From Zancudomyces culisetae HAW-14-8 (lineage: Eukaryota > Fungi > Kickxellomycota): 64,000 nucleotides of DNA. Positions 1 to 62,203 of the stretch are shown piece after piece. Both the position numbers and the translations under genes were made by a program. The notes under the pieces are model-generated. The model did no database searches, was not told where the DNA came from, and saw only the letters and a list, made by a program, of their open reading frames with translations. The DNA lies in the NCBI GenBank assembly GCA_052426225.1, contig JBNJNM010000009.1:868001-932000 (forward strand). The letters are read 5' to 3'. Position 1 is the stretch's first letter. The number at the start of each line of letters is the position of its first letter.

Positions 1-1
1 A

Positions 2-1867
2 GTGCTGTCACACCCAAAATGGGATATACCTTTCATAGTTACAACCGACGCTTCATTACAAGGTATCGGGGGTATATTAAGCCAAGTTCAGGACCAAAAA
101 GAACATCCTATAGCATATGTAAGTAGATCATTAAAAAAATCAGAAAAAAACTACTCGATAACTCACCTAGAAGGACTTGCCATAATATTCGCAGTTAACC
201 AGTTCAGAAACTACATCTGGGGAAGGCAATTTAAAATTGTAACCGATCATTCAGCGCTGGTCAGACTCTTCGACTCCAAGGAAGCATCAGGAAGGCTAGC
301 TCGATGGGCCATTATTTTGCGAGAATACGACTATACATTAGAACACCGAAAGGGAAAGAATAACCCTGCAGATCTAATATCGAGGTGTATCCCGGATTAT
401 ACTACAGACGATACAAATGAAAAAGGTTTAAAAAGTGAAGAATTAGTGTATAAGGACTTTAGTTTTATTAACTTTAAAGAAAAGAAAAATGAAGAAAAAG
501 AAATTATAGATAAAACAGAAGAAACTACAAACGATGAAGAAAATTCAAAGGCGTTGTTCTACATGGAATTTATCGATTACACAGTTATAAAAAATTATTT
601 GACTAACAACACTTACCCCTCAAATAGTGACGAAACTTACAAAAACAAATTACGAACTAAGTCTAAACGTTTCGAATTGAAGAATGATAAATTATACAAA
701 TACTCATCTAAATTTGGAATACGAGAGGTATTACACGAGTTGAATTGTAAGGAAAAAATTATCGAAATTCATAATGAAAATCACCTTGGAATTAACAATA
801 CATGGGAATTGGTTAAGAAAAAATATTATTCACCAAAATTATTCGAGATTACAAAACATGTGGTTAATTTTTGCGATATTTGTCAACGATATAAATCATC
901 AAGAATAAGAAAAAATTTAGCAAACCCAATAATTGCTACTCAACCATTCGAAATTATAGGATTAGACATAATAGGACCAATCAATCCAATCTCAACAGAA
1001 GGAAATAGATACATTATTTCCGCGATAGATTATTTAACTAAATGGCCGATTTGTCGAGCTGTTGAACAAGTTCAATCTGATACTATAATTAATTTTTTAG
1101 TTTACGACGTAATAGCCAATTATGGGATACCAAAAAAATTGATAACAGATAGAGGATCCAACTTCTTAAGTGACACAGTACTTGAATTTTATGAATTTAT
1201 GGGCATAAATCATAACCCTACTACAGCTTATAGACCACAATCAAATGGTCAAGTAGAAAGGCAAAATCAATACATAAAAAATGTCCTTTCAAAAATTTGC
1301 AAAAATGATAAAACAAATTGGGATAAATATTTATGGAAAGTTTTATTGGTTATAAGAAGTACTAAAAATAGGGTTACAAAAAAATCGCCTGCAGAGCTAT
1401 TATATGGTTTAAATATCACTACACCAGAGTCATGGAATAACATTAATACTAATGAAAACTTAGATGAGGCAATATTAGAGCGACTTGAATTTGTTAATAA
1501 AAATTTTAAAGAGTTGAGAGAGCTAGCAGTAGATAAACTAAAAACTAATAAAAAATATGAGAAATTTAGGTACGACAGCAATGTAAAAGAATACAAATTT
1601 AGTGAAGGACAGCAGGTGTTAAAGCACAATGATATTCCAGAATCGAAATTTGCAGAGAAATGGAAGGGGCCATACGAAGTAGTTAGAGTGCTAGAAAATG
1701 GAACATATATGGTACGCGATTTGAACAACAATCACGATATAATCAATGGCGATAGACTCAAGCCATATAACACGATCGGAATTCCAAATGTGATTTCGAC
1801 ACGAATAATTTCGAGTTTACGAGATCAGAGAAATAGGAGGAGGTCGATAGGGACTATCGAACCTTAA
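2..1867 (+). CDS. Pol C-terminal part (RNase H + integrase) of a Ty3/gypsy element, 5'-partial
   Basis: Motifs IVTTDASLQG, KIVTDHSAL, H..NHLG...CDICQ, GLDIIGP, ITDRGSNF, NGQVER, WKGPY. No chromodomain. Clearly homologous to the C-terminal part of ORF 55184-59965. Confidence 0.93.
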   Translation: MLSHPKWDIPFIVTTDASLQGIGGILSQVQDQKEHPIAYVSRSLKKSEKNYSITHLEGLAIIFAVNQFRNYIWGRQFKIVTDHSALVRLFDSKEASGRLARWAIILREYDYTLEHRKGKNNPADLISRCIPDYTTDDTNEKGLKSEELVYKDFSFINFKEKKNEEKEIIDKTEETTNDEENSKALFYMEFIDYTVIKNYLTNNTYPSNSDETYKNKLRTKSKRFELKNDKLYKYSSKFGIREVLHELNCKEKIIEIHNENHLGINNTWELVKKKYYSPKLFEITKHVVNFCDICQRYKSSRIRKNLANPIIATQPFEIIGLDIIGPINPISTEGNRYIISAIDYLTKWPICRAVEQVQSDTIINFLVYDVIANYGIPKKLITDRGSNFLSDTVLEFYEFMGINHNPTTAYRPQSNGQVERQNQYIKNVLSKICKNDKTNWDKYLWKVLLVIRSTKNRVTKKSPAELLYGLNITTPESWNNINTNENLDEAILERLEFVNKNFKELRELAVDKLKTNKKYEKFRYDSNVKEYKFSEGQQVLKHNDIPESKFAEKWKGPYEVVRVLENGTYMVRDLNNNHDIINGDRLKPYNTIGIPNVISTRIISSLRDQRNRRRSIGTIEP

Positions 1868-1876
1868 GGGGGGGGA

Positions 1877-2299
1877 TGTCGTATGAATATATAGATGATA
1901 ATGTATAGTAGGTTAATCTACTGTAAATCTCTATTATTCATACTGATTGTCTGATTGTTGCAGATGCTTGCACATCTGTTTTCACCATTGTGGTTTTCCT
2001 TTGTGCAGCAACAATCAGACAATGGTTTACTTTATTACTATTAGGATTTTATAATACTTTATATAACAAACTACTTAAATAGCGACGACAAGGTCTAAGG
2101 ATACCTTGTTCGGGATTTTATACTCTTTCTTCTAGCGTTTTATACCAACGATAACTAAATAAAAGATTCTTAACTACAGTTAACTAGTAATTTAGGAAGG
2201 TCCTGGACCAATTTTAAACATTAAGTAATAGTGATTACAGCTTCGTCGTACTGTAATACACTCAATATTTTTATACAATATACAATTTTTCATACGACA
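1877..2299 (+). repeat. 3' LTR (423 bp), family 1; unit 1 of LTR array A
   Basis: 11-bp terminal inverted repeat, follows the PPT, near-identical copy at 4337-4762, right flank TCGT. Confidence 0.95.
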
Positions 2300-2303
2300 T
2301 CGT

Positions 2304-2992
2304 TGTTGTAATTTTAGTTTGCATAAAATTAATCAGGAAATTTCCGCAACTAAACCTACAAAAAGTTCTGCTAATAGAGGGGGATTGTTACTGGAATAAG
2401 TTTTACTTTATTTAACCAGTCAACCCTACCTTTTTAGCTTATATTTAATTTAGTTTTATGTATTTATTACTTCATTAAATGCGATAAAACTGGGTAAAAT
2501 TACGCCCAACTCCTAAATTTTGGTGTGCAAAACAATTAATTTTGGTCCAAAAATTAGACTCTGATACCTTTCTGATACCCTTTGAAAATTGTGTTACGCT
2601 TCACTACCTATGTTTTTTTTTGGTTTTAGGTAGGTTTTTGCTCAAATCACAAATTTCAATTTTATAGAGTAAAATCAAGTATTTTAGAGCTAATTTGTAT
2701 TTTATTTAATGAATAACTTTTAAAAATAAAAAGATAAAACCACCAAACTTGTGGTGAGGTTACTAGTAATATACTAGTACCTGACTAGCTATTTTATTAG
2801 AACTTTATATAATAGAAACTTAAAATAAAATAATCAAAACTTAATATTGACTCACTTTTTGGGTGATAATTTCACCCTAGTAATCCCAGATTACTAGCTC
2901 GAACACCCGAGATAACGGTGGTTATTCGGTGTTTGAGAAGCTGTATGCTGTTTATCCAATAGTTTAGCTTGGATAGAACTAAGCATACAACA
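2304..2992. repeat. Solo LTR (~689 bp); unit 2 of array A
   Basis: TGTTGTAA...GCATACAACA termini. TCGT on both sides (the right copy uses the T of the next LTR). An internal block resembles 4068-4332 and the reverse complement of 61262-61858. Confidence 0.8.
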
Positions 2993-2995
2993 TCG

Positions 2996-3366
2996 TGTCG
3001 TGAATTTAAATCATCGCAATTTATGTTTTTTCCCAATGGGTTTTTAATAAATTGCAAAGATGGTTAAATTAAATTCACGTAACATCCTTGTAAATCTGAG
3101 AATCACACTGTCATAGATGAGTCATGGGAATCATCTATAAATGATTTACAACATCTTTTCCCATTCAACAAGGGAAACCCCCTGTTTCAATAATATTATT
3201 ATAATTCATATTTCACATGTTTAAAACAGTTATAACTTTATAATTAAATTTATTATAGTAGTAGTTCGTTAGACCCAAAAAATTATATATAGGGCAAATA
3301 ATTTCTATCTAGTTTTCGATATGACTTAAGCAAATAAAAATATAAAACTATAATATTCACACGACA
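2996..3366. repeat. Solo LTR (~371 bp); unit 3 of array A
   Basis: TGTCGTGAA...TTCACACGACA termini, followed by GTCG. Confidence 0.82.
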
Positions 3367-3372
3367 GTCGTG

Positions 3373-3828
3373 TGTTAGCGAATTCCAGGTTCCAGTTCGC
3401 TATTATATAAAAAATATATTTATTTGATAGAAAAACTATACTATGTACTAATGTTGTTAAGTTTTCATTATAGTAACTATAACTTTAATAAATAGACCAA
3501 ACTTGTATTTTACGTGTTTATTTGATGATGTTTAAACTATCTGAATAACTATCATATTTATACTTTTTTTAAAACAACTATTAAACTTAAAACCTAAATA
3601 TATTTTAAACTTAAAACTATACTAATTAAAATAATAATCTAGAATGTTGCTGTAGAAAAAATCCAGAAGGATAAAAAAAACTAGGCAACACATAATATAC
3701 TAAATAACCTATAATAAATATTAACTTATATTAAGAGATAAACCTAAATATTAATAAATAGAAATAAATATGTAATTGGTAAGTTATTATTATAAATGTC
3801 TAGAGGTAGCTCTAGCCACTATATAACA
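3373..3828. repeat. Solo LTR (~456 bp); unit 4 of array A
   Basis: TGTTAGCG...CTATATAACA termini, 4-bp TSD CGTG on both sides, diverged second copy at 5025-5484. Confidence 0.87.
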
Positions 3829-3830
3829 CG

Positions 3831-4063
3831 TGTCGTATAGTAAACTATACTGAAGAGTTGTCCCAATTTTATTGGTTAGTTTAATAGATGTATTTTATAG
3901 TAATAGTATAAATATGTTTATTGTGACTTCATTAATAAATTGTCCTTTTCCACAGATAAATAATAGTATAATAAATTTATATATATTGAAATTGACCCGT
4001 CCCGTGTAGTACTTGGTAGCGAAAGTTACCAAGTAGGACGTTAAGCATTTTCACTACACGACA
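3831..4063. repeat. Solo LTR (~233 bp); unit 5 of array A
   Basis: TGTCGTATAGTAAA...TTCACTACACGACA imperfect 14-bp TIR, followed by GTCG. Confidence 0.82.
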
Positions 4064-4067
4064 GTCG

Positions 4068-4332
4068 TGTTAGATTCAATTTATTATGAATTCTAACTGG
4101 TTCTACTAGAGGGGTGGTATCACTAGACTGGGTTTAACCCTTTTAACTAGTTACCACTTTCTAGTCATACATATAAATGGAACCGGAACATTTATATGGG
4201 TCAAAATTTGACGATTTATTTAAGATTCAAAATAATAATTTCTTAAATACTAAATTTTACTAGAAAAACTAATAAAAATACTAACTATAAAATTAACCAA
4301 TAGTATGCAAACATTCTATTTTGCATACAACA
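4068..4332. repeat. Solo LTR (~265 bp); unit 6 of array A
   Basis: TGTTAG...TTTTGCATACAACA termini with GTCG on both sides. Its right end is the reverse complement of the start of LTR 61262 (TGTTGTATGCAAAA). Confidence 0.8.
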
Positions 4333-4336
4333 GTCG

Positions 4337-4762
4337 AGTCGTATGAATATATAGATGATAATGTATAGTAGGTTAATCTACTGTAAATCTCTATTATTCA
4401 TACTGATTGTCTGATTGTTGCAGATGCTTGCACATCTGTTTTCACCATTGTGGTTTTCCTTTGTGCAGCAACAATCAGACAAAGGTTTACTTTATTACTA
4501 TTAGGATTTTATAATACTTTATATTACAAACTACTTAAATAGCGACGACAAGGTCTAAGGATACCTTGTTCGGGATTTTATACTCTTTCTTCTAGCGTTT
4601 ATTATACCAACGATAACTAAATAAAAGATTCATAACTACAGTTAACTAGTTATTTTAGGAAGGTCCTGGACCAATTTTAAACATTAAGTAATAGTGATTA
4701 CAGCTTCGTCGTACTGTAATACACTCAATATTTTTATACAATATACAATTTTTCATACGACA
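4337..4762 (+). repeat. Solo LTR (426 bp), family 1; unit 7 of array A
   Basis: Differs from 1877-2299 at only a handful of positions (first base T>A); GTCG on both sides. Confidence 0.95.
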
Positions 4763-4766
4763 GTCG

Positions 4767-5020
4767 TGTTGTGTGTTGCCATGTTTAACCTCCCATTTAG
4801 TGTTTTTTACACCAAATAACACACGGGACGGGTCATTTTACTTACCTTTTACTATATGCTGCAAATTATTATATAGTTATTTTGATTTAGCAAAAGAGGA
4901 CATTTATTTAGTTAAACAAAAATTTCAATTTTATACAATAAAATCTACAAAAAATCTAACTAAAAATTACAAAACACGTTTAACCAATGGAAATGTTTCA
5001 CCTATTGTAGGCATACAACA
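4767..5020. repeat. Solo LTR (~254 bp); unit 8 of array A
   Basis: TGTTGTGTGTTGCC...GGCATACAACA termini with GTCG on both sides; its first ~45 bp recur at 60365-60411. Confidence 0.87.
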
Positions 5021-5024
5021 GTCG

Positions 5025-5484
5025 TGTTAGCAAAACACAGGTTTACTTCGCTATTGATTATTATATATTTATTTTGATAGAAATACAATACTAAGTACTA
5101 TGTTTAAAATTGTTTTCACTATAGTAACTATGCTAAATTAAATAGACCAAACTTAAATATACTATATTTATTTGATAATGTAATACTAAATGAATATCTA
5201 GCCATATTTATACATTTTAAAAATGACTATTACAATATCCTGAAATATTTTTATACTAATTAAATAAAAATCCTATAAAATATATATTAAATTGAACTAG
5301 AGTGTTGCTGTAGAAAAAATCCAGAAGGATAAAAAAAACTAGGCAACACATATATAATAAATAACCTATAATAAATAATATCTTATATTAAATGATAAAC
5401 CTAAATATTAATATAAAAGTATATGAATAACTGGTAAGTTAAAATTATATAATGACTAGAGGTAGCTCTAGCCACTATATAATA
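5025..5484. repeat. Solo LTR (~460 bp), same family as 3373-3828; unit 9 of array A
   Basis: TGTTAGC...CTATATAATA (terminal CA mutated), GTCG on both sides, shares long blocks such as TGTTGCTGTAGAAAAAATCCAGAAGGATAAAAAAAACTAGGCAACACA with unit 4. Confidence 0.87.
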
Positions 5485-5909
5485 GTCGTTGTCAGAATTT
5501 TTTGTTCTGTTCTGGGTTTTACCCGACTTTACCGATTTTGTAAGTATAGTAGATTAAATTTACTACCTATAATCGGTAGGACACAAGTTCAATTTGTGTT
5601 TATAAGTTTGTTTATTTAAATATAATAGTAGTTATTTTCGAAAAGAAAAAGGATAATAAACTCGATATGTGGAAAAGACACCTTTTTATGTCTTTTCCTT
5701 CGCTATTTTGAAGGATTAAAAAGATGAAATACTTAAAGAATAATATAAACCTAACAATAGTAGTAATAAAAACAATGAGTAGATCACCATTGTGTGAAAA
5801 AAACCTATAAAAGGAAAAAACACAATAGTGATATTCAGTAAATCTTCATAAATGAAGATTTACCATTGTCTGTCATTGTAATATGACAGTTTCCCCCCCC
5901 CCCTCTTAG

Positions 5910-7361
5910 CTACGCTCGTATTGATCTATCTGGTACAGTTTTGTATCTTCTTAACTTGGTTTTTAAATTGTTAGTAACTTGTGGGATCATATATCTGCTG
6001 TTATGACTTGAATATTTTAAGATTATTTATTTATTACTATTATATTATTTAGAAAAATATGATATTCAATAGTGAATAAGATATTTTTCTCTGAAGTTCT
6101 CTTTCGATGGATTTCGAAAGGGTTTTTATACTTTTACTCCAGAGATTTTTCCATATAAAATTTTCTTATGTAAAGTTGCTATCAAACTATAAATTTGACT
6201 ATTAAACTTATGAGTAACTGATGTGATTAACTACCGTGAGTTTAGTGTGTCAATGATTGCGTCATTCATGTTATTCTGACGATTCTTTGAATTATTAGTT
6301 TCGGAATTCTTTCTAGGTTTCTTATTTCCTAAAATGGTCTGTGAATATTTTTATAACGGAATTTCATCGCGAAATTCATTTTTTACTTGACTTGGTTAAA
6401 TTAATTTAATAATTTGTACTTAGTTACATTATAGTAATTTGTATATGGTTACAATTTCATTTTGTAACCTTCTTGATTTGGTCATGGAGAATTATAATAA
6501 ACATGAATTTATTTAATTTATTTTTAACAATTCCTAACATCTGCTGTTATCAAATGATTTCAAACTGTCACCGTTGCATAGTTCACGATTTCCATTTTCA
6601 TCGCCAATTACGTAAGCTCCTTTAGAGAGTTTTTGTAAAATTTTGTAAGGGCCTTCCCATACCTTATCAAATTTTTCTGTGCCGCTATCTATAAATTTCA
6701 GTACTAAATCGTCAATTTTAAAGTGAAAATTTTTTACTTTTTTGTTATAAAATTTTTCGTCTTGTTTCTTAGCTTCAATATTATTTTGATGGCTTAAGTT
6801 TCTTAATTCAGGCAAGTAATCATTAATAAGCTTTATCCTATTGTAAATTAATTCTTCTTCGATGTCGATGTCTCCGTTGTAAGACCAAGTCGATACTAAC
6901 TGAGGTTGGAAGCCAAAGAGTAGCTGTGCTGGGCTGTAACCTGTAGATTTTGATACTAAGGTACGTATAATTAATAGTGTTTTCCATAGATACTTATCCC
7001 AGTTTTTTGTGTCTTCTTTGCATTGTTTTCTTAGCGTATTTTTGAGGGTCTGATTTAGGCGCTCCACTTGGCCGTTGCTTTGTGGCCGATGTGAAGTGCT
7101 CGGTGTGTGATTAACGCCTAGCCATTTAAAGACATCGCCTGTAGCGTTACTTATAAAGCACGACCCTCTGTCTGTTATGATTTGTTGAGGTACTCCAAAA
7201 TATTGTATGATATTATTCATTATAAAACTTATAATTGCTTCGCTTGTCATATTAATAGATGCCGCAGCCACGGGCCATTTAGTACAATAGTTGATGGCTG
7301 TGATAATATATCTATTTCCTACGTCGGTTACCGGAGAAATCGGACCTATGACGTCCATACC
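5910..7361 (-). pseudogene. Disrupted Ty3/gypsy integrase
   Basis: GMDVIGP, ITDRGSCF, NGQVER, WEGPY. Interrupted by solo LTR 5999-6539 and cut off at 7362. Reconstructed C-terminus ...FDNSRYMIPQVTNNLKTKLRRYKTVPDRSIRA*. Confidence 0.88.
5999..6539. repeat. Nested solo LTR (541 bp) with 5-bp TSD
   Basis: TGTTA...TAACA termini; TCTGC duplicated at 5994-5998 and 6540-6544; removing it restores the integrase frame. Confidence 0.92.
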
Positions 7362-7848
7362 TGTTAGATACCAATATTATACACAATATTATTGATATTA
7401 ACTAATTAACACACAGTTAATTTATAAAAGTTATTATTAATTATACTAGTTTAAAACACAAATTAATAATATAATATTAGTTAATAATATCTTTATTATT
7501 GTTAAACGAGATTGACAAACTTAATTGTTCATGAAAGGGATTAGTATCACCTTTTATACATTTAAGTTTGTACTAAAACTTTAATATAAACTAATACTAT
7601 TAATATAACTAATATTAATAAACAAATAAACAAATATCATTAATATACACAATATTAATGATGATTCATTATTTATTGATCATGTGTATCAATATTAATG
7701 TTTTAAACTAATTATTAAATAAAAATTAAATAATATAAACTAATAATTAATTAATATTAATGATACACATTTAATATCATTAATATTAATTAATACCATA
7801 TTGTATTTTAATATACAATATTGTTATGATACATGTGTATTCATAACA
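7362..7848. repeat. LTR-like AT-rich element truncating the integrase
   Basis: TGTTAGATAC...GTATTCATAACA termini, internal ACACAATATTA-type subrepeats, no matching TSD (ATACC vs GGACG). Confidence 0.65.
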
Positions 7849-53899: not shown

Positions 53900-53973
53900 T
53901 GCTCTGTACAGGGGTCGAACCTGTGACCTTGGCGTTATTAGCACCACGCTCTAACCAACTGAGCTAACAGAGC
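53900..53973 (-). tRNA. tRNA-Ile (anticodon AAT)
   Basis: Reverse complement GCTCTGT TA GCTC AGTTGGTTA GAGC G TGGTG CT AAT AA CGCCA AGGTC ACAGG TTCGACC CCTGT ACAGAGC A folds into a complete cloverleaf with A and B boxes. Confidence 0.97.
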
Positions 53974-53980
53974 TGCTTTT

Positions 53981-54314
53981 TGTTGTAGAATCTATAAAAC
54001 TCTAATGTTTGTTTATTATTTATCTTTTTTATAAGTATGGTTTGTGTATTTTCTTATTTGTTTAATACTATTATAACTTATTATTATATTATGTGATTAA
54101 AAAGATTATTTTATTCATTTTTTGTTGAGGGCATTCTCCTATACCCTGAATTATCTTCGATAATAAAACTAAATGTTATTCTACTTAATGACTAAAAATA
54201 TTGATTGACAAAAACCACAAGGGGAAAAAGGTACAATCTCAGTTAACTATACTAATATTAATAAAACTCAATAATTTAAATTAAAAATAACTATCGTCGT
54301 ATTCTCATACGACA
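53981..54314 (-). repeat. Solo LTR (334 bp), 7 bp upstream of tRNA-Ile; unit 1 of array B
   Basis: TGTTGTAGAA...TCTCATACGACA termini, TTTT on both sides; its reverse complement is homologous to 61862-62197. Confidence 0.88.
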
Positions 54315-54319
54315 TTTTT

Positions 54320-54708
54320 TGTTATATTTTTATTTTAACTTAAACTTTTATTAACTTAAAATATACTTGAACTTTATCCTATTCTCTTACTATACCAAAT
54401 ATCCGTTAATATTGTTATTATTAACTATTGAATATTAGTATACTGAATAAAAGAACTTATTACTACTATTTATTTGGATTAAAGATGTGTTTTATTTAGT
54501 GCTATTTCCCTGCACTTATATACTTTTACTGCTAACTTAAAAAATACTATTAAAACTATACAAAGATACATAAACTTTACTACTGAAAGTTAAAGCATAA
54601 ATTTGTATAAACTGTTTAAAACTTGTAATAAAAATAATAATACTAATTAAAAACATATGATTACTAAACTAAACTGTTTCAAGGAATGTCTTGGTTTACT
54701 ATATGACA
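54320..54708. repeat. Solo LTR (389 bp); unit 2 of array B
   Basis: TGTTATAT...ATATGACA termini; TTTT TSD (the right copy uses the T of the next LTR). Confidence 0.78.
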
Positions 54709-55101
54709 TTTTGTCGTGTGTGTTTATAATACTTACACACACGCTAAGAAAGGACCAACGTTGAACCATTGTCCTAAAGTGGCCTTTTCACCATTGTGGT
54801 TTTTGCTACAATTAGTGGTTCAACGTTGTCTATATTTTATATTTTATTACTATGTTTATATATTAATACTTTCATAATAGTATAAACTATTTTAGGAAAA
54901 AACCTTTAAATACGACGAAACAAGATTCTAAGGAATCTTGTTCGAAATTCACTCAAAATCATAGCGTTTATATATTATTAAATAAAACAATTTATACTAA
55001 AAGACTATAAAAGAGTACCGAGCCAAAATTAATTATACTCAGCCTCGTCGTACTGTAGTATATAAATTATAATAAAAGTTTTAAAAACATACGACAGAAT
55101 A

Positions 55102-55120
55102 TGGTGATCCAGCCAGGACT
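55102..55120 (+). other. Primer-binding site, probably tRNA-Val(TAC)
   Basis: TGGTGATCCAGCCAGGACT is complementary to a tRNA 3' end ...AGTCCTGGCTGGATCA-CCA. The Val assignment is recalled from fungal tRNA-Val(UAC) acceptor stems. Confidence 0.7.
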
Positions 55121-55183
55121 ATTATATTGGTCTAAAGGATAAATAATAAAATTAAATCTTAGTTTAAATTACTATAACATAAT

Positions 55184-58100
55184 ATGACAATACCAGAACC
55201 CAAGGCAAAGCCTAGAATGGCTATTTCTGAAGAAAAAAAAAGTATGGACAACATGATATTACAGCAACTCTGTAACATGCAAAGAGTGACTATGGAGCCA
55301 GAGAAGTTTAACCCGCTCGAAGAACTTGAACCTAAAAAGTGGTTAAAAAGATATGAGATGGCAGCAATAAACAATGGATGGAGTGATGGAAATAAGATTG
55401 AAAAGCTTGAGAATTACGTAGTCGGAAAAGCAAGAACATGGTATGATAGAATGTATACATCCTTTGCATCATGGGAGGATACTAAGCAGAAGTTTAATGA
55501 GAAGTTCGCAGGTGAGGAAGAAGAGTACAAAGCATGGAATGAAATGCAGGAGATAAGACAGGAGGAAGGTGAAGACGTAGAATCCTTATCTATTAGAATA
55601 GATGTAACGGCAAGACGCGCAAACATTTGTGGCGATAAAGAAAAAATTAAATATTTAAGGAAAGCAGTAGCACCTAACCAAAGAAAACTAGTAATGAAAA
55701 GTAAAGTAAAAATATATGAAGAAGCAGTCAACTTACTAATTGAGGAAGAACTCGTGGATAACATATGCTTCGATAACAGACCCCAAACTAGTAGTAAGAA
55801 GATTGAAGACAATGGAAGGGACAGACTGAACATACAGCCTTCTGATATTGAAACTCTAATTGACAAATTTAATCAGATTAGTTCTTTTATGTTAAAAGAA
55901 ATGAACGGATCCAGATTTAGATCATCACATACTTACAACCCACAGGAGAAGCGAGAATACCAAAAATCTAGACCACACTATAATGGTAAAAACAGATCTT
56001 ATGGTGATAGTCATAGAAATAATAATTGGGAACCAAAGGACCAACCACAAACTGAGATGAGCCAAGGGAATGCTAAAGGACAAGCCCGAGGTATTACAGT
56101 AGCCGAGAAAGAGATCAATTGTCTGGAAGTTGAATCGTTTAGATCTAATCCAAATAGTATAGATAATGAGGTTTATATCACAGAAAAAAGAAAAATTAAC
56201 AAAAATACTGACTCAATAGTTGAAGAAACAAACCGTAGGAGAAAAAGGCCAAACCAACGAATTGAAGCAGACTTGAGCGAAGAAGCTAATGAGGTACAAC
56301 CAAGTCAGACCGTTGCAGAAACAGAGCCACAACAACATTTGAATTTATCACCAGGTACAAATAGGTTGGGACAAGAACAAAACAGAGCAAACTATTCAAA
56401 TAATAATTCTGTAATTAAACCTTACTCAATAATGGAAGACCTAGCAAAAGTGAAAGCCTCAATCAGTATTCCACAGTTAATCAATATCGCCCCTATAGTA
56501 CAGACACAACTGGAAAGATTCAACAATAGGATTAACAACGAAAGGACTGTTGGCACAATATCAAATCAAAAGACTACCAATTGCAAAACAAACGTACACA
56601 TATATGGAAAATCAGTACCTACGGTTATTGACACGGGTGCAGCTTGTAGTGTGCTTGCAACGGCAATGGCAGATAAGCTTGGTATTTTTCCAGATATGGA
56701 TCCTAACGAATACATAATAACAGCTGATGGTAGTAGACATATGACATTAGGAAAAGTCAGTAAATTACCGATAAGACTAGCAAATGTAGAGTTTGAAACT
56801 GAGGCTCTAATAATGGACTTACCAAATAACGTTCTTATACTGGGAATGGATTGGTTGTCTAAATTTACAGCACAAGTAGATTTGAGAACAAATAGTTTGA
56901 CTATAACTAAAAACAATAACAAAGTTATGTTACCCCTACTAGTTAGCAAAGAGCTAAACGCGCAAACTTGGGACAATGAATCTGAGGACTTGAAGCTATT
57001 CGGTATAGGAAAAGAAACTAAAGTTATCAAGGAAATATCAACAAAGATTGACGAGATATTAGAAGACGTTATACATAAATACGCGGATCAGTTAGTAGAG
57101 GAATATACTGAACTTACAGTGACTAATGTTTTAGAACATTCAATAGACACTGGAGATGCTGCACCCATCAAACTAAAACCTTATCGGATCCCTAATGCAA
57201 TGAAAGAATTAGTTCGAAAAGAAATAGAGTTAATGAAAAAGAAAAACATAATTGAACCGTGTTATTCAGATTGGAGTGCTCCCGTTGTCACAGTTTGGAA
57301 AAAGAATGGATCTTTACGAATATGTTCAGACTATAGAAAGTTAAATGCAGTTACTAAAAAAGATAATTACCCATTACCAGATATAAACGATATATTTGAA
57401 GCACTCACAGGTTCAAAAATTTTCAGTACACTGGACGCACTTTCAGGATTCTGGCAAGTCAAATTAAAGGAGGGGGATAAGCATAAAACCGCGTTCAGCA
57501 TTCCAGGCGAAGGTTTATACTGTTACAATGTAATGCCCTTCGGTCTTTGCAACAGCCCTCCAACCTTTCAACGGCTGATGGAACGAGTCTTAGGTCCAGT
57601 TCTATGGAAGTGTGCAGTAGTATATGTTGATGACATTATTATATACTCCAAAGATATATACTCACATGCCAATGATCTTGCCAGAGTATTTGAACTTCTT
57701 AAAGTTAATAGAATTAAATTAAACAAGAATAAGTGCACATTCGGACAAAGAAGATTAGAATATTTAGGTCATGTCATAACTGAGGAAGGATTCTCTACAA
57801 ACCCAGAAAAAGTTATCGCTATGACTAATCTTCCTAATCCTAACAATGTTAAACAACTACAATGTTTCTTAGGGACGTTTAATTATTACAGAAAATTTAT
57901 TGAGAATTACACCAAAATAACTAAACCTCTAACATACTTACTAAGAAAAGACGTAGAATGGGCATGGACGGTTGAATGTGAACAAGCAGTAAACCTCATA
58001 AAACAAAAACTTACCACTGCACCAATATTAGTTCACCCGAATTGGGACTTACCTTTTATTATTACTACGGATGCATCTATTACCGGGATAGGAGCTATTT

Positions 58101-59965
58101 TAAGTCAAGAACAAAATGGTAACGAACACCCAATAGAGTTCAGAAGTAGAGGACTATCTAAAAGCGAAAGAAATTATTCGATTACTCACCTTGAAGGACT
58201 GGCAGTGATCTATGCAGTCAAACAGTTTAGGAATTATGTCTGGGGACATAAGTTTAAAATCGTTACAGACCACTCTGCTCTTATCCGTTTATTTGATTCA
58301 AAGGAAGCTACTGGGCGTCTAGCCAGATGGGCAGTTATTTTAAAGGAGTATGATTACACCCTTGAACACCGCAAAGGCAAAGACAACCCAGCTGACCTTC
58401 TATCAAGATGTCTTCCAACAGCCGGAGTAAGCAATAGTACATTTTTATTATATAAGGAGGAAGATAATAATTTAAAAATAAATAATGCAGATATTGAAGT
58501 AAAAGAACTAGATGTAGTCAAAAGCGAAAACGAAAACGAAAACGAAAACAAAAACGAAAACATCAACGAAAAAAAAAACGAAATCGAAAATAATGACAAG
58601 GTTAAAAAGAACAACAAAATACTAATGAATAAATACAAAGAGAATGCTCTCTTCACAATGGATATTCTAAAATATACGGCAATCAAAAATTTACTAACAA
58701 ATAATACTTATCCCAATAATGCCGACGAGTTGTTTAGAAAAAAACTACGAATGCAAGCGAATAGATACAAGTTGATAAATAACGAATTGTTTAAGTTTTC
58801 AAGTAAATTTGGAAATAGACAAGTTTTGAACGAGTTAAATTCTAAAGAAACAATCAAAAAATACCATGAAGAAGACCATCTAGGAATTAATAACACTTGG
58901 GAAAAAATAAAACAGAAATTTACTGGTCCTAATTTATTTGAAATCACGAAATTGGTCGTGAATTATTGCGATTTATGTCAAAGATACAAAGGATCATCTT
59001 CAAATAACAACTTTTTCACACCCATTATTGCAAAAAATCCATTCGAAATTTTTGGACTTGATGTTATTGGACCAATCAACCCAATTTCAAAACAAGGAAA
59101 TCGATATATAATAACTGCTGTGGATTATTTGACCAAATGGCCAATTGCGAAAGCTGTGGATAATATAAAATCAAATATTATTGTAGATTTCTTAGTATCA
59201 GAAATTGTATCACATTACGGAGTACCCAAACAACTAATTACCGACAGAGGCTCTAATTTCTTGAGTGATGTGTCTACCGAATTTTATAAGTTTTTAGGAA
59301 TAAATCATACTCCAACAACTTCGTATAGACCGAAATCAAATGGACAAGTTGAACGATACAACCAGTCGATAAAAAATGTTTTGTCTAAAATATGTAAAAA
59401 TGATAAAAGGAATTGGGACAAATATTTGTGGAAGACTTTACTAATTTTGCGAACTACCAAAAATAGATCAACTAACAAATCCCCTTCTGAACTATTATAT
59501 GGAACATCTTTAACTACACCCATTACTTTTAACACTATAGATACGAATGTAGATTTAGAAGAATCTATTATAGAACGAACAAAAATTACCGAAAACGAAC
59601 TTCCTTACCTAAGAGATATAGCAGTCGATAAAGTTACTAAAAACAAAGAGTATGAAAAGCGTAATTACGACAAGAAGGTTGTTGAAAAGATATTCGAATC
59701 GGGGAATTTAGTTTTAAAATTTAACGAAGTAGTAAATTCGAAATTTGACGAAAGATGGAGTGGACCATATCTTATAATACGACCAAATGGAAAGGGGACA
59801 TACATAATAAAGGACACTGATGATAACTACGACATTGTCAACGGTGATCGACTAAAAATTTATAACAACGAAAACGGAATTCCTATAGTTAGTTCTAGCA
59901 ATTTACAATCTTCCATAGGCGACCAACGAGGTATGAAAAATTTGACCGGTACGATCATTCCTTGA
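55184..59965 (+). CDS. Gag-Pol polyprotein (capsid, aspartic protease, RT, RNase H, integrase)
   Basis: VIDTGA protease; DYRKLN, MPFGL, YVDD RT; TDAS RNase H; HHCC-DDE-GPY integrase. PR-RT-RH-IN order; no CCHC knuckle or chromodomain seen. Confidence 0.97.
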   Translation: MTIPEPKAKPRMAISEEKKSMDNMILQQLCNMQRVTMEPEKFNPLEELEPKKWLKRYEMAAINNGWSDGNKIEKLENYVVGKARTWYDRMYTSFASWEDTKQKFNEKFAGEEEEYKAWNEMQEIRQEEGEDVESLSIRIDVTARRANICGDKEKIKYLRKAVAPNQRKLVMKSKVKIYEEAVNLLIEEELVDNICFDNRPQTSSKKIEDNGRDRLNIQPSDIETLIDKFNQISSFMLKEMNGSRFRSSHTYNPQEKREYQKSRPHYNGKNRSYGDSHRNNNWEPKDQPQTEMSQGNAKGQARGITVAEKEINCLEVESFRSNPNSIDNEVYITEKRKINKNTDSIVEETNRRRKRPNQRIEADLSEEANEVQPSQTVAETEPQQHLNLSPGTNRLGQEQNRANYSNNNSVIKPYSIMEDLAKVKASISIPQLINIAPIVQTQLERFNNRINNERTVGTISNQKTTNCKTNVHIYGKSVPTVIDTGAACSVLATAMADKLGIFPDMDPNEYIITADGSRHMTLGKVSKLPIRLANVEFETEALIMDLPNNVLILGMDWLSKFTAQVDLRTNSLTITKNNNKVMLPLLVSKELNAQTWDNESEDLKLFGIGKETKVIKEISTKIDEILEDVIHKYADQLVEEYTELTVTNVLEHSIDTGDAAPIKLKPYRIPNAMKELVRKEIELMKKKNIIEPCYSDWSAPVVTVWKKNGSLRICSDYRKLNAVTKKDNYPLPDINDIFEALTGSKIFSTLDALSGFWQVKLKEGDKHKTAFSIPGEGLYCYNVMPFGLCNSPPTFQRLMERVLGPVLWKCAVVYVDDIIIYSKDIYSHANDLARVFELLKVNRIKLNKNKCTFGQRRLEYLGHVITEEGFSTNPEKVIAMTNLPNPNNVKQLQCFLGTFNYYRKFIENYTKITKPLTYLLRKDVEWAWTVECEQAVNLIKQKLTTAPILVHPNWDLPFIITTDASITGIGAILSQEQNGNEHPIEFRSRGLSKSERNYSITHLEGLAVIYAVKQFRNYVWGHKFKIVTDHSALIRLFDSKEATGRLARWAVILKEYDYTLEHRKGKDNPADLLSRCLPTAGVSNSTFLLYKEEDNNLKINNADIEVKELDVVKSENENENENKNENINEKKNEIENNDKVKKNNKILMNKYKENALFTMDILKYTAIKNLLTNNTYPNNADELFRKKLRMQANRYKLINNELFKFSSKFGNRQVLNELNSKETIKKYHEEDHLGINNTWEKIKQKFTGPNLFEITKLVVNYCDLCQRYKGSSSNNNFFTPIIAKNPFEIFGLDVIGPINPISKQGNRYIITAVDYLTKWPIAKAVDNIKSNIIVDFLVSEIVSHYGVPKQLITDRGSNFLSDVSTEFYKFLGINHTPTTSYRPKSNGQVERYNQSIKNVLSKICKNDKRNWDKYLWKTLLILRTTKNRSTNKSPSELLYGTSLTTPITFNTIDTNVDLEESIIERTKITENELPYLRDIAVDKVTKNKEYEKRNYDKKVVEKIFESGNLVLKFNEVVNSKFDERWSGPYLIIRPNGKGTYIIKDTDDNYDIVNGDRLKIYNNENGIPIVSSSNLQSSIGDQRGMKNLTGTIIP

Positions 59966-60364
59966 GGAGGGGGTTGTCGTGTGTGTTTATAATACTTACA
60001 CACACGCTAAGAAAGGACCAACGTTGAACCATTGTCCTAAAGTGGCCTTTTCACCATTGTGGTTTTTGCTACAATTAGTGGTTCAACGTTGTCTATATTT
60101 TATATTTTATTACTATGTTTATATATTAATACTTTCATAATAGTATAAACTATTTTAGGAAAAAACCTTTAAATACGACGAAACAAGATTCTAAGGAATC
60201 TTGTTCGAAATTCACTCAAAATCATAGCGTTTATATATTATTAAATAAAACAATTTATACTAAAAGACTATAAAAGAGTACCGAGCCAAAATTAATTATA
60301 CTCAGCCTCGTCGTACTGTAGTATATAAATTATAATAAAAGTTTTAAAAACATACGACATTTTT

Positions 60365-60411
60365 TGTTGTGTGTTGCCATGTTTAAAGTCCCATTTAGTG
60401 TTTTTTACATC
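60365..60411. repeat. Truncated LTR, same family as 4767-5020; unit 4 of array B
   Basis: TGTTGTGTGTTGCCATGTTTAA..TCCCATTTAGTGTTTTTTACA matches the start of 4767; cut at 60412 by another LTR. Confidence 0.85.
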
Positions 60412-61257
60412 TGTCGCAATAAGCCGAATTGTAATGCAAATCCGAATAGTGTACAAGAAATTTTGTTGTACACTCATTGCGGAATACCAATTTTTATAAT
60501 TTTTATTGTCGTTTAAATTTTTGTTCAAATTAATTTCGACTCAGCATGAAATAAATTCTACATGCTGAGTCCATTCAATAATGATGATTCTAGTACGAAA
60601 TATGTTTTCATACTGAACATCAAATAATTTTAATGATTATGTGTTCCCACACATAATCTTAATTGCACGTATGCTGCAATTATGAAACAAAACTATTAGT
60701 ATACTTAACAGCATAATAATAGTGTATAGTTAATTTATTATTTGAAAAAACTAGGTTAGCATTTAAGTTTTTAATCATATATATAATTGATAGAGTAGTC
60801 TATTAGGTAACTTTATCCATGTCCTACTTTACGGATTAAATAGTATAGTTAATAAACTCAATAAAACAAACTTTAAAAGTATATACATATAATAAATAAC
60901 CAAACATCATGAACTATTTCTTTTATACCAAAAGTAAATCCAAGAGGGATTCTGAAACTAGCTCCAGCCTGAGCACGGCTAGTAGCATGGACCAAGAGAC
61001 TGGGGTTTTAAGTCCTCGGACTCTTGGGGAGTTGACAGAAAGTGTCCGTCAACTCCAAATCCGTAGGAGCCCAGAACCAATGTCCGTGAGCAGTATCTCA
61101 CCGACATTGTATAGGGGAAACAGCTCACCCGAGCACCCTATTATGCACATCACACTACGGGGTAGTGGTGCATCTTCATCAAGTGGTCATACCCAAACTG
61201 GTATGACACATGATGAACTTAATAATCATGGTTAGAGAAATTATGATTATTACGACA
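60412..61257 (+). repeat. Long hairpin-rich LTR-like unit (846 bp) containing ORF 60909-61235; leftmost unit of array C
   Basis: TGTCGCAATAA...TTATTACGACA TIR; flanks CATC and AAAC do not match. Confidence 0.7.
60909..61235 (+). CDS. Small Ser-rich ORF inside an LTR-like unit, function unknown
   Basis: 108-aa ATG ORF forming a GC-richer island in AT-rich LTR sequence. Confidence 0.4.
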   Translation: MNYFFYTKSKSKRDSETSSSLSTASSMDQETGVLSPRTLGELTESVRQLQIRRSPEPMSVSSISPTLYRGNSSPEHPIMHITLRGSGASSSSGHTQTGMTHDELNNHG

Positions 61258-61261
61258 AAAC

Positions 61262-61858
61262 TGTTGTATGCAAAAGCATCAACTTAAATTTACCGCTTTC
61301 ATTGCAGCAAAATAGCAGAGAAATCAATTTTGAAAAAATTGTTTCCTGCGCAATTCAATTTAGATTACAAATATTATGACCATGTCATAAATTTTTGTCA
61401 ATTTTACAGTCAATTTAATAGTACAAATCGATTTATTTTTTAATCGAATCGATTTTATACTTTATTAGTGGATTTATTTTTAATCAATTTTATTAGTAAA
61501 TTATTAGTATAAATTGAAAAAATTTGTAAATCCGACCAAAACCACACTAAAAGTAAAAATAAACATATATAGAGAGGCGTAATACTATTTTTTTAGTGTA
61601 AGGAAAGGGCCATTTTGGATATATTTTCCAGGTTTTGGGAGGAATTCTTTTAAATAAAATTATTTTTACCAAAAATTGTGGAAATTGTCCAGTTGTGTTC
61701 TTTCCGAGGGGGTTTTATAGATAGTGGTTAACTGGCTAGAAATGGTAAATCCTGTGTCAGTAATAACCACCCTTCTAGGGAACCGTGATTGATATTAGTG
61801 GAAGTTTTTTGGGAAAATCCTATTGGACTAGTACTAAAAAATGAAAACAAATTCAACA
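61262..61858 (+). repeat. Solo LTR (~597 bp); array C
   Basis: TGTTGTATGC...ATTCAACA termini, left flank AAAC, related in reverse complement to 4068-4332 and 2304-2992. Confidence 0.8.
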
Positions 61859-61861
61859 AAA

Positions 61862-62197
61862 TGTCGTATGAGAAATACGATGGAACGATTTATCTACCTA
61901 TTTTATATTTTATATAATTAGCAGTATTTTTAGATTGAACTTTTTCTCCCCTCGTGGTTTTTGTTCAACATTCATTATTAGGATAGTTTAAAATTAGATT
62001 ATAGTTAACACAAAATTATAGGACATATTTGGGGGTTAATACAATCGCCCACAACTTAATTGAATAAAATAACTCTTAACCACATTTAAAATTAGTTAAA
62101 TATAGTATAAACATATAAAAAATAATACATAATATTATACTACACGGATAGAGAAATACATTAAGAAATAATATTAGAACTAGTAAGTTCTACATCA
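61862..62197 (+). repeat. Solo LTR (336 bp); array C
   Basis: TGTCGTATGAGAA...TTCTACATCA termini, AAAA TSD, same family as the reverse complement of 53981-54314. Confidence 0.85.
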
Positions 62198-62203
62198 AAA
62201 ACA

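Follow-up and report, generated by a model that had tools for sequence, protein, structure and literature searches.

Stacked Ty3/gypsy LTRs upstream of tRNA genes in Zancudomyces culisetae, a probable record of successive integrations

The window analysed here is a 64,000-nt stretch of the genome of the fungus Zancudomyces culisetae HAW-14-8. Its left part holds array A, a stack of ten long terminal repeats (LTRs) at 1877-5888, bounded by part of one element (element A) and the remnant of another (element C). The features are as follows (TSD, target-site duplication).

1-1876, plus strand: 3' internal part of element A, with RNase H, integrase and a polypurine tract at 1866-1876; the element starts at G000:C9:864656
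1877-2299, plus strand: unit 1, 3' LTR of element A, 423 nt, 100% identical to the 5' LTR; TSD TCGT at 2300-2303 and left of the 5' LTR
2304-2992, plus strand: unit 2, solo LTR, 689 nt; TSD TCGT, the right copy taking the first T of unit 3
2996-3366, plus strand: unit 3, solo LTR, 371 nt; TSD GTCG
3373-3828, plus strand: unit 4, solo LTR, 456 nt; TSD CGTG, the right copy taking the TG of unit 5
3831-4063, plus strand: unit 5, solo LTR, 233 nt; TSD GTCG; closest other copy 93% identical
4068-4332, plus strand: unit 6, solo LTR, 265 nt; TSD GTCG; 35 copies in the genome
4337-4762, plus strand: unit 7, solo LTR of the unit 1 family, 426 nt; first base mutated (AG for TG); TSD GTCG
4767-5020, plus strand: unit 8, solo LTR, 254 nt; TSD GTCG
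5025-5484, plus strand: unit 9, solo LTR related to unit 4, 460 nt; end dinucleotide mutated (TA); TSD GTCG
5490-5888, minus strand: unit 10, 3' LTR of element C and probably the oldest unit, 399 nt; one close copy elsewhere (94%)
5889-7361, minus strand: remnant of element C, comprising the 3' internal region and the C-terminal half of the integrase; ends abruptly at 7361
7362-7848, no strand assigned: further TG..CA repeat, 487 nt, 92% identical to a unit in locus L019; abuts and truncates element C

Re-inspection of the sequence agrees exactly with the preliminary description of ten units separated by nothing but short junctions, which are 2-6 nt long and read, in order, TCGT, TCG, GTCGTG, CG, GTCG, GTCG, GTCG, GTCG and GTCGT. 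Eight of the ten units have the termini TGTYR...YRACA; the exceptions are unit 7, which starts with AG, and unit 9, which ends with TA. The reading of the array as solo LTRs stands for units 2-9 but not for unit 10, which belongs, as 3' LTR, to a truncated element on the minus strand. In this element C, unit 10 is followed at 5892-5903 by a C-run complementary to a polypurine tract. Element C also has an integrase ORF at 6534-7358 on the minus strand (Pfam rve), and its remnant is 47% identical (blastx) to residues 1291-1562 of the element B polyprotein described below. The flanks of the repeat at 7362-7848 do not match, and it is therefore placed outside the ordered stack.

Units 1 and 7 belong to the same family (98.4% identity), units 4 and 9 are related (79%) and the remaining units are distinct, the array being drawn from about eight LTR families. 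These are genuine LTR families of which full-length copies exist, as had been proposed: for units 1, 2 and 3 and for the unit 9 family, LTRs were found in pairs with the 4.9-5.7 kb spacing of full-length elements. The unit 2 family has at least 42 copies, several of them in pairs spaced 5.7 kb, and the unit 3 LTR forms a 99%-identical pair on contig C21 with a spacing of 4.9 kb. The 10-mer ACAGTCGTGT, allowing at most one mismatch, occurs eight times in the 64-kb window, seven of them within array A, compared with a mean of 1.95 in shuffled sequence, where eight occurrences were reached in 0 of 100 shuffles.

From the window alone it had been predicted that GTCGT would precede the first 5' LTR and that, after zero or more further LTRs, a minus-strand tRNA or other Pol III gene would lie roughly 7-10 bp away. 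Both are present. A minus-strand tRNA-Pro(TGG) gene lies left of the window at G000:C9:864576-864647 (L002:6576-6647), and between its 5' end and the 5' LTR of element A are the 8 nt gttgtcgt, the last five of which are GTCGT. Element A measures 5,644 bp; its two 423-bp LTRs are identical, and it has an ORF of 1,570 amino acids and TCGT at both flanks. Its Pfam domains within the window are RT_RNaseH, Integrase_H2C2 and rve. Seven copies of the identical tRNA-Pro gene, including that of array A, are occupied by an LTR, and the flank before the LTR varies by locus: at the six others it is GACTTTTT, GTGTGTTT, GATGTTTT, TGTGTCA and, at two copies that are duplicates of each other, GTTGTTAT.

A second stack, array B, lies at the other end of the window beside a tRNA-Ile gene:

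53900-53973, minus strand: tRNA-Ile(AAT), the anchor of array B
53981-60409, plus strand: array B, consisting of two solo LTRs, the full-length element B and an LTR piece
53981-54314 and 54320-54708, plus strand: the two solo LTRs
54712-60359, plus strand: element B, full-length, with identical 385-bp LTRs and an ORF of 1,593 amino acids
60365-60409: LTR piece of the unit 8 family, 45 nt

Here the junctions are TTTTT, TTT and TTTTT, and their source is the tRNA-Ile flank tgcTTTT. All in-window matches to the ten units of array A fall inside these two tRNA-anchored clusters.

Element B allows the elements to be classified. Its polyprotein has Pfam matches to Retrotrans_gag (residues 80-157), a protease (469-579), RVT_1 (706-865), RT_RNaseH (955-1056), Integrase_H2C2 (1221-1270) and rve (1287-1383), an order of gag, protease, RT, RNase H and integrase in which the integrase is downstream of RT, and its best match among solved structures in the PDB is the polyprotein of Ty3 (7q5b, E=3e-97). 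By these predicted domains the array elements are Ty3/gypsy retrotransposons (Metaviridae). The C-terminus of the integrase gives a weak Pfam match to Integrase_p58_C (26.2 bits in element A, where the cut-off is 27, and 12.7 bits in element B), the sole hint of possible contacts with TFIIIB/TFIIIC. Elements A and B both have identical LTR pairs, and in each the 5' LTR is followed by GAATA and then the primer-binding site TGGTGATCCAGCCAGGAC; the polypurine tracts ahead of their 3' LTRs are AAGGGGGGGGA and GAGGAGGGGGT. When the sampled loci were searched for the primer tRNA, nothing matched but the primer-binding sites of other elements. Altogether, the same site is used by eight or more LTR families and by three or more autonomous lineages (at most 51% amino-acid identity).

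The preliminary description explained every junction by successive integrations with a 4-bp TSD, and this model does reproduce all of them. We took off the tRNA-proximal unit together with one 4-bp duplication and repeated the procedure outward, using strict TGTYR/YRACA termini and checks for solo or full-length status. (An earlier automatic removal with loose termini was dropped because it produced many false units in AT-rich DNA, and outside arrays A and B results that tolerated one mismatch were not relied on.) A perfect 4-bp TSD was recovered nine times out of nine in array A (TCGT, TCGT, GTCG, CGTG and five times GTCG), and three times in array B (TTTT). The TSD is thus of fixed length, 4 bp in every one of the 12 units of the two arrays that could be tested, and five-base flanks fail to match. 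Each of the solo LTR units 2-9 has a matching 4-bp duplication once the younger units have been removed. The junction motif alone is 2.4-fold enriched (81 against 33.8 in shuffles) and was used only jointly with consistency of the duplicated word.

The stack has a direction. Unit 4 had been said to have arrived after its right neighbour because its duplication CGTG includes the TG of that neighbour; this overlap argument holds, the duplication being CG plus the TG of unit 5, and it applies likewise to unit 2, which duplicated TCG plus the T of unit 3. Wherever a junction is shorter than 4 nt the missing bases are borrowed from the start of the distal neighbour (6/6) and never from the CA end of the proximal one (0/6; sign test p=0.03; loci L040 and L037, where the neighbouring LTR start is ambiguous, were left out of the count), which indicates that the proximal unit is the younger. 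Age proxies run the same way: the element with identical LTRs and an intact ORF is proximal, and the truncated element, like the mutated termini of units 7 and 9, lies on the distal side. The best identity to another copy drops with rank in array A (Spearman -0.63, p=0.05), a marginal correlation with a crude proxy of age. Stepwise removal, the six polar overlaps and the proximal position of the intact element A all bear out the order first suggested, with the newest insertion on the left and the oldest on the right.

The arrangement is general in this genome. An LTR start supported by homology lies 3-10 nt from tRNA +1 at 29 of 47 sampled non-redundant tRNA loci, at 24 of these at 7-9 nt, and a TGTYR sequence occupies the 3-10 nt position at five further loci. 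Other multi-unit stacks carry words of their own, TGTT/TTTT at L004, GGCT/TGGC at L019 and CCGT, GTGT and GTTG at L040. Since the duplicated word varies between loci, the target is a position and not a sequence, as for the Ty3-like elements that target Pol III start sites (Ty3, Tj1, Tyl3 and Tca8). No LTR was found upstream of any of six 5S genes, all with identical upstream sequence, or upstream of the single U6 gene; five of the six 5S genes, on C1 and C4, recur at intervals of about 13.2 kb, taken as rDNA units, and selection or repeat homogenisation could account for these LTR-free upstream regions. The targeting is accordingly shown for tRNA genes only.

We conclude that array A is very probably a cumulative record of at least ten separate Ty3/gypsy integrations upstream of tRNA-Pro, the youngest nearest the gene. 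[quoted passage not shown] In Saccharomyces cerevisiae the Metaviridae element Ty3 integrates at Pol III transcription start sites via contacts between its integrase and TFIIIB. By analogy with Ty3 and Tj1, the integrase here would be tethered to the RNA polymerase III initiation complex. Because that complex would be placed by the promoter within the tRNA gene, the cut site would be measured from the gene, independently of the sequence upstream. On this reading each insertion duplicates 4 bp and leaves the tRNA-side copy again at the correct distance, so that the following element inserts at that point, re-duplicates it and displaces the earlier insertions outward. A cut moved 1-3 nt outward takes the first bases of the previous LTR into the duplication and gives a junction shorter than 4 nt. 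Most elements were later reduced to solo LTRs, presumably by LTR-LTR recombination, and the outcome is an ordered stack with the youngest insertion beside the tRNA gene and the oldest most distant.

The order might be a less faithful chronology than this, if integration was directed by the tRNA gene and units were later reshuffled or deleted by unequal or ectopic recombination of same-family LTRs, gene conversion or block duplication, with rank tracking age only loosely. Some arrays do bear such traces. Flanks fail to reconcile at L004 (units 4 and 5), L019 (unit 1) and L035, indicating that secondary recombination blurs the record in places; arrays have been duplicated as blocks (L041=L042, L055=L056); the order U2-U6-U1 recurs with the same gaps on both C12 and C10; and in array A unit 6, 99% identical to other copies, lies distal to unit 5, at 93%. 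However, ectopic recombination between different insertions would usually destroy the duplications, which are perfect and mutually consistent in 9/9 testable units of array A, and all six polar overlaps point in one direction. We therefore regard loose chronology as an unlikely account of this stack. Assembly error, with LTR pieces wrongly joined by the assembler, is far less probable still: the units are mostly of different families, so no long repeat-driven collapse would join them, the TSD arithmetic at the junctions is exact, and stacks built in this way are found at many loci elsewhere in the assembly, on other contigs. In a contig from an independent rhizosphere metagenome, moreover, a unit-9-like LTR end is joined through CATTTTT to a unit-2-like LTR start. 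Among the sequencing runs searched for the array A locus, none covers it and two contain pieces of related LTRs only.

The remaining alternatives concern the target. Five array A junctions are exactly GTCG, as would be expected of sequence-specific integration at a word containing it, but array B uses TTTT and other arrays TGTT, GGCT, GTAT and CCGT. These words contradict a GTCG-specific target, which we consider scarcely credible; GTCG recurs in array A because one locus-specific word has been re-duplicated. It is also possible in principle that the integrase recognises chromosomal LTR ends (TGTYR/YRACA), the tRNA gene having seeded only the first insertion. The junction word GTCG(T) is indeed similar to the LTR start TGTCGT, and TGTCGT stands immediately ahead of a unit-1-family LTR in array A and at L035. 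Against this, the first LTR keeps a constant 7-9 nt from the tRNA gene whatever its family, the flank before it varies among the seven occupied tRNA-Pro copies, and the CA end of the proximal unit takes part in none of the six overlaps. Moreover, the junction words match the tRNA flank (TTTT, GGCT, GTAT, TGTT) and not LTR sequence, and the in-window matches to array A units are confined to the two tRNA-anchored clusters. LTR-end targeting is accordingly very improbable, and targeting from the tRNA gene is preferred.

The likeness to Ty3 drawn in the preliminary description is apt, and extends to the Ty3/gypsy domain order, to position-specific, sequence-independent insertion just upstream of tRNA genes and to the solo LTRs (sigma) that remain there. 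Ty3 differs in duplicating 5 bp at a distance of about 15 nt from the mature tRNA 5' end (PMC5006619, PMC5911963), against 4 bp at 4-9 nt here, in having GAG3 and POL3 in separate frames joined by a frameshift where the elements here have one ORF, and in being one family of few copies in yeast, whereas many families and lineages share the site here. Tj1 of Schizosaccharomyces japonicus, also Ty3/gypsy, has nearly the same insertion window, 5-11 bp upstream of the mature tRNA 5' end (PMC4600332), and the many families Tj1-Tj10 likewise gather around tRNA genes. However, Tj1 makes a 5-bp duplication and reads through a Gag stop codon, its tested inserts were all oriented with the tRNA gene whereas elements A and B point away from it (element C points with it), and the S. 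japonicus clusters lie at centromeres; the Tj1 paper (PMC4600332) does not describe exact stacks in which a target word has been re-duplicated. DGLT-A of dictyostelids, which have further tRNA-targeted retroelements as well, resembles the present elements in its single gag-pol ORF, lack of a detected chromodomain, position upstream of tRNA genes and many solo LTRs, but it inserts 13-33 bp upstream, its host is an amoebozoan and its targeting is considered convergent (PMC5006619). The 'repeat-spacer-like' comparison with CRISPR arrays is sound as a likeness of form (polar addition beside a fixed anchor, a short re-duplicated word, order equal to time) and goes no further: here acquisition has no machinery dedicated to it, the stack has no known function for the host, and the 'spacers' are the invaders' own terminal repeats.

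The closest named relatives of polyprotein B are Ty3-like elements of Harpellales, from Z. culisetae and Smittium culicis (58% and 47% identity). In S. culicis the copy sits a short way upstream of a tRNA-Pro-Val-Glu-Met cluster, the junction itself falling within an assembly gap, and a Calcarisporiella element, 39% identical, has no clear tRNA neighbour. We found no published description of targeting by Harpellales Ty3-like elements.

The novelty first claimed for these stacks was overstated, since the mechanism is the known Pol III-directed targeting; what is unusual is how clean and legible a record it has left here. With these stacks, exact targeting of Pol III start sites by Ty3/gypsy elements comes to include a lineage of early-diverging fungi, in which many diverged families have a common target and a common primer-binding site. 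As the same 4 bp are re-duplicated at each insertion, each tRNA gene retains the succession of earlier invasions in readable order. The list can serve as a simple internal clock for following how element families turn over, compete and give rise to solo LTRs, and it provides a natural test of whether tRNA genes tolerate full replacement of their upstream DNA. More tentatively, and we think on balance doubtfully, the stacks might form a strictly polar archive throughout the genome, the youngest unit in every case beside the tRNA gene, in which the relative timing of activity of at least eight competing LTR families would be readable at well over 100 loci. The Pol III-targeting module might also be common by descent to these Kickxellomycotina-like elements and the ascomycete Ty3/Tj1 lineage, in which case start-site targeting would be an ancient fungal trait instead of a repeated convergence. 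Elsewhere, the unit 8 family also forms LTR pairs just 734 bp apart, that is, miniature elements.

The ten TG...CA units of array A, the LTR stack at window 1877-5888, were all present at exactly the positions given in the preliminary description, and range from 233 to 689 nt in length. Eight of the ten have termini of the form TGTYR...YRACA, the exceptions being unit 7, which starts with AG, and unit 9, which ends in TA. Units 1 and 7 share a family at 98.4% identity, units 4 and 9 show a more distant relationship (79%) and the remainder are distinct; LTR pairs 4.9-5.7 kb apart occur elsewhere in the genome for units 1, 2 and 3 and for the unit-9 family. From unit 1 outward, the junctions are TCGT, TCG, GTCGTG, CG, GTCG (four times) and GTCGT, with no other sequence between units. 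With one mismatch allowed, ACAGTCGTGT occurs eight times in the window, seven of them in array A, against an average of 1.95 in shuffles.

It had been predicted that GTCGT would precede the 5′ LTR of the first element and that a minus-strand Pol III gene would lie 7-10 bp away. The 20 kb to the left of the window (G000:C9:868001-932000) was taken and searched with ARAGORN, and a tRNA gene was found there, in locus L002; a second tRNA anchors array B, another LTR stack (window 53981-60409).

Anchoring tRNA genes
L002:6576-6647, minus strand, tRNA-Pro(TGG), found by ARAGORN
window 53900-53973, minus strand, tRNA-Ile(AAT), anchor of array B

Outward of the tRNA-Pro 5′ end the sequence reads gttgtcgt, which contains the predicted GTCGT and places the gene 8 nt away, and then an LTR starting TGTCGTATGAAT from L002:6656. 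This is the 5′ LTR of element A, whose 3′ LTR is unit 1. Element A is 5,644 bp of natural contiguous sequence with identical 423-bp LTRs, one 1,570-aa ORF and a TCGT flank on either side; its five-base flanks differ (GTCGT vs TCGTT), indicating that the duplication is 4 bp. When the proximal unit and one copy of its 4-bp flank were taken out and the step was repeated on the remainder, nine rounds on array A returned the perfect duplications TCGT, TCGT, GTCG, CGTG and then GTCG five times, as expected from the proposed successive integrations with a 4-bp duplication. The sole mismatches required were the mutated termini of two units. A tenth 'unit' returned by the script was judged false, since it required one mismatch and overlapped into the tRNA. 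We consider the ten-unit observation confirmed, and the reading of array A as tRNA-anchored successive insertions supported.

Array B lies at an equal distance from its tRNA but has a different word, the short locus-specific sequence that is re-duplicated. Next to the tRNA-Ile come tgcTTTT, a pair of solo LTRs, the full-length element B (54712-60359; identical 385-bp LTRs, 1,593-aa ORF) and a unit-8-family LTR fragment. Its junctions read TTTTT, TTT and TTTTT, and stepwise removal recovered three perfect TTTT duplications. Past array B (window 60410-64000) LTR pieces are still abundant, with LTR starts at 61863 and 62204, one family that also adjoins a tRNA in another fetched locus (L040), and a further element with a gag ORF from 62718 and an in-frame stop near 63073. 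Junctions here are AAA/AAAAC, as if from a stack whose anchor is a plus-strand tRNA past the end of the window.

To assess targeting across the genome, loci were drawn from 63 picked by score from Rfam tRNA matches, regardless of repeat content. The 5 kb upstream was taken for 40 of them, one mitochondrial; ten further copies of the identical tRNA-Pro gene were added and duplicates removed, leaving 47 nuclear loci. An LTR start was counted when homologues elsewhere begin at the same base. Such a start lies 3-10 nt from tRNA +1 at 29 of the 47, with offsets of +3 (2 loci), +6 (2), +7 (10), +8 (11), +9 (3) and +10 (1), those at array A, L055, L022 and L019 having been corrected by eye; a further five loci show TGTYR at +6 to +8, for which the sample has no homologue. 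At six other occupied copies of tRNA-Pro the LTR is preceded by GACTTTTT, GTGTGTTT, GATGTTTT, TGTGTCA or GTTGTTAT (two copies, duplicates of each other), and at array A by GTTGTCGT. Since identical tRNA genes carry different words, the target is a position. Stacks of at least three units with locus-specific words occur at L004, L019 and L040, and shorter ones at L008, L020, L031, L032 and L037; LTR-match coordinates give more with 1-5 nt gaps (e.g. C12:965472-966855). No LTR insertions were seen upstream of the 5S and U6 genes located in the genome. A unit-6-family LTR split at about position 115 by ~5.7 kb (G000:C6:373293-373444 and 379160-379275) indicates a nested insertion within an LTR, and therefore that integrations are not all tRNA-proximal.

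Five of the six 5S genes located are spaced at ~13.2 kb on C1 and C4, as if inside rDNA repeats, and contig C18 (61 kb), with 12 clustered tRNA genes, is probably the mitochondrial genome. Nuclear tRNA genes often form head-to-tail pairs 1-6 nt apart (L013-L019, L031-L042; e.g. G000:C11:79082-79232), namely Thr(AGT)-Thr(TGT) and Ala(AGC or TGC)-Lys(CTT). Such pairs are probably transcribed by Pol III as polycistronic units, and LTRs are present only upstream of the first gene. At unoccupied-looking tRNAs (L006, L007, L013, L014, L021, L027), positions -12 to -1 of the tRNA-sense strand read (A/T)ACA or GCA and then an A-run that stops 2-3 nt before the gene, a layout matching that of an LTR end (...ACA) with a TTTT duplication. 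These sites are either decayed insertions of great age or native start-site contexts that the LTR end mimics.

When a junction is shorter than 4 nt, one neighbour's duplication takes in bases of the other. The count of polarity was restricted to such junctions with unambiguous LTR boundaries (n=6).

Short junctions
array A: TCG, CG
array B: TTT
L004: T, TTT
L019: GGC

At all six the proximal unit's duplication is intact and extends into the TG... start of the distal unit, and at none does the distal unit's duplication extend into the ...CA end of the proximal one (sign test, p=0.03), indicating that the proximal unit arrived later. These overlaps, and the identical LTRs of the proximal element A, agree with the earlier claim that the newest insertions lie on the left. 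Distal of unit 10 come the complement of a polypurine tract and then, on the minus strand, the C-terminal half of an integrase, which makes unit 10 the 3′ LTR of an element (C) that is truncated and oriented toward tRNA-Pro. Element C ends at 7361, interrupted by another LTR-like repeat (7362-7848), and its distal duplication is no longer readable; this truncated element is the most distal, where the oldest had been placed. Unit 7, a relative of unit 1 within one family, has diverged and bears a mutated end. Best identity to another genomic copy is, for units 1-10, 99, 99, 99, 97, 93, 99, 98, 98, 96 and 94% (Spearman -0.63 with rank, p=0.05). Flanks could not be reconciled in L004 (units 4 and 5), L019 (unit 1) and L035, presumably through loss of material by later recombination. 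Some arrays are duplicated as blocks, and tRNA genes with their arrays occur as inverted duplicates tens of kilobases apart.

Duplicate blocks
L041 vs L042, C21:2944540-2949786 and 2979671-2984917
L055 vs L056, C9:574515 and 534732
C13:1484246-1486270 vs 1500978-1502581

By analogy with what is established for Ty3 and Tj1 (PMC5911963, PMC4600332, PMC5006619), the integrase may be tethered to the Pol III initiation complex. The promoter inside the tRNA gene would place this complex, and hence the cut site, at a constant distance, independent of the upstream sequence, including any earlier LTR. A cut site so fixed would lead to repeated duplication of one 4-bp word and to outward growth of the stack. 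For Tj1 the insertion distance is 5-11 bp from the mature tRNA 5′ end (PMC4600332), nearly that of the array elements, whereas Ty3 (about 15 bp from the mature 5′ end; PMC5006619, PMC5911963) and DGLT-A (13-33 bp upstream; PMC5006619) insert farther away. The duplication is 5 bp in Ty3 and Tj1, in contrast to 4 bp here. Full-text searches of literature outside subscription journals did not reveal any account of precise stacks from several families with a re-duplicated target word, or of tRNA targeting by elements in Zoopagomycota. The mechanism is of a known kind, seen here in a new lineage and with an unusually legible record.

The array elements are Ty3/gypsy, with the order gag, protease, RT, RNase H, integrase, and the best solved relative of the polyprotein is that of Ty3 (E=3e-97). 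Elements A and B share 51% protein identity, and the element C integrase is 43-47% identical to theirs, so that at least three autonomous lineages have a common target. The primer-binding site TGGTGATCCAGCCAGGAC is common to A, B and elements at five other loci (L009, L016, L026, L030, L034), and is thus shared by elements with only about half of their protein sequence in common; another family has TGGCGCTCCCAGCTAGGC (window ~62541, L020).

Positions of TGGTGATCCAGCCAGGAC
window 54712+385, element B
L002:7079, element A

At three places the unit-8 family is present as a pair of 254-bp LTRs with starts separated by 734 bp, making each element only ~990 bp long; it is a miniature LTR element, presumably non-autonomous, aimed at the same target.

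Paired unit-8-family LTRs
G000:C6:1404352-1405339
C6:1398275-1399262
C21:1075703-1076692

The host fungus has an AT-rich genome of 27 Mb, with few introns within the window; the best matches to its clathrin heavy chain come from Harpellales and Kickxellales and share only 43-46% identity. Among named sequences, those nearest to polyprotein B come from Zancudomyces culisetae (58%) and Smittium culicis (47%), the latter copy lying directly upstream of a tRNA-Pro-Val-Glu-Met cluster (run at L061:6383-6673), with the junction within an assembly gap. No sequencing run contained the array A locus. Rhizosphere metagenome contigs (run X2) carry LTRs 90-99% like units 2, 5, 8 and 9, and in one contig a unit-9-like LTR end is joined via CATTTTT to a unit-2-like LTR start. 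The assembly of array A has only indirect support, of which this independent LTR-LTR junction is one instance, and together with the metagenome LTRs it indicates that a close relative of the host, with the same kind of stacks, lives in rhizosphere soil.
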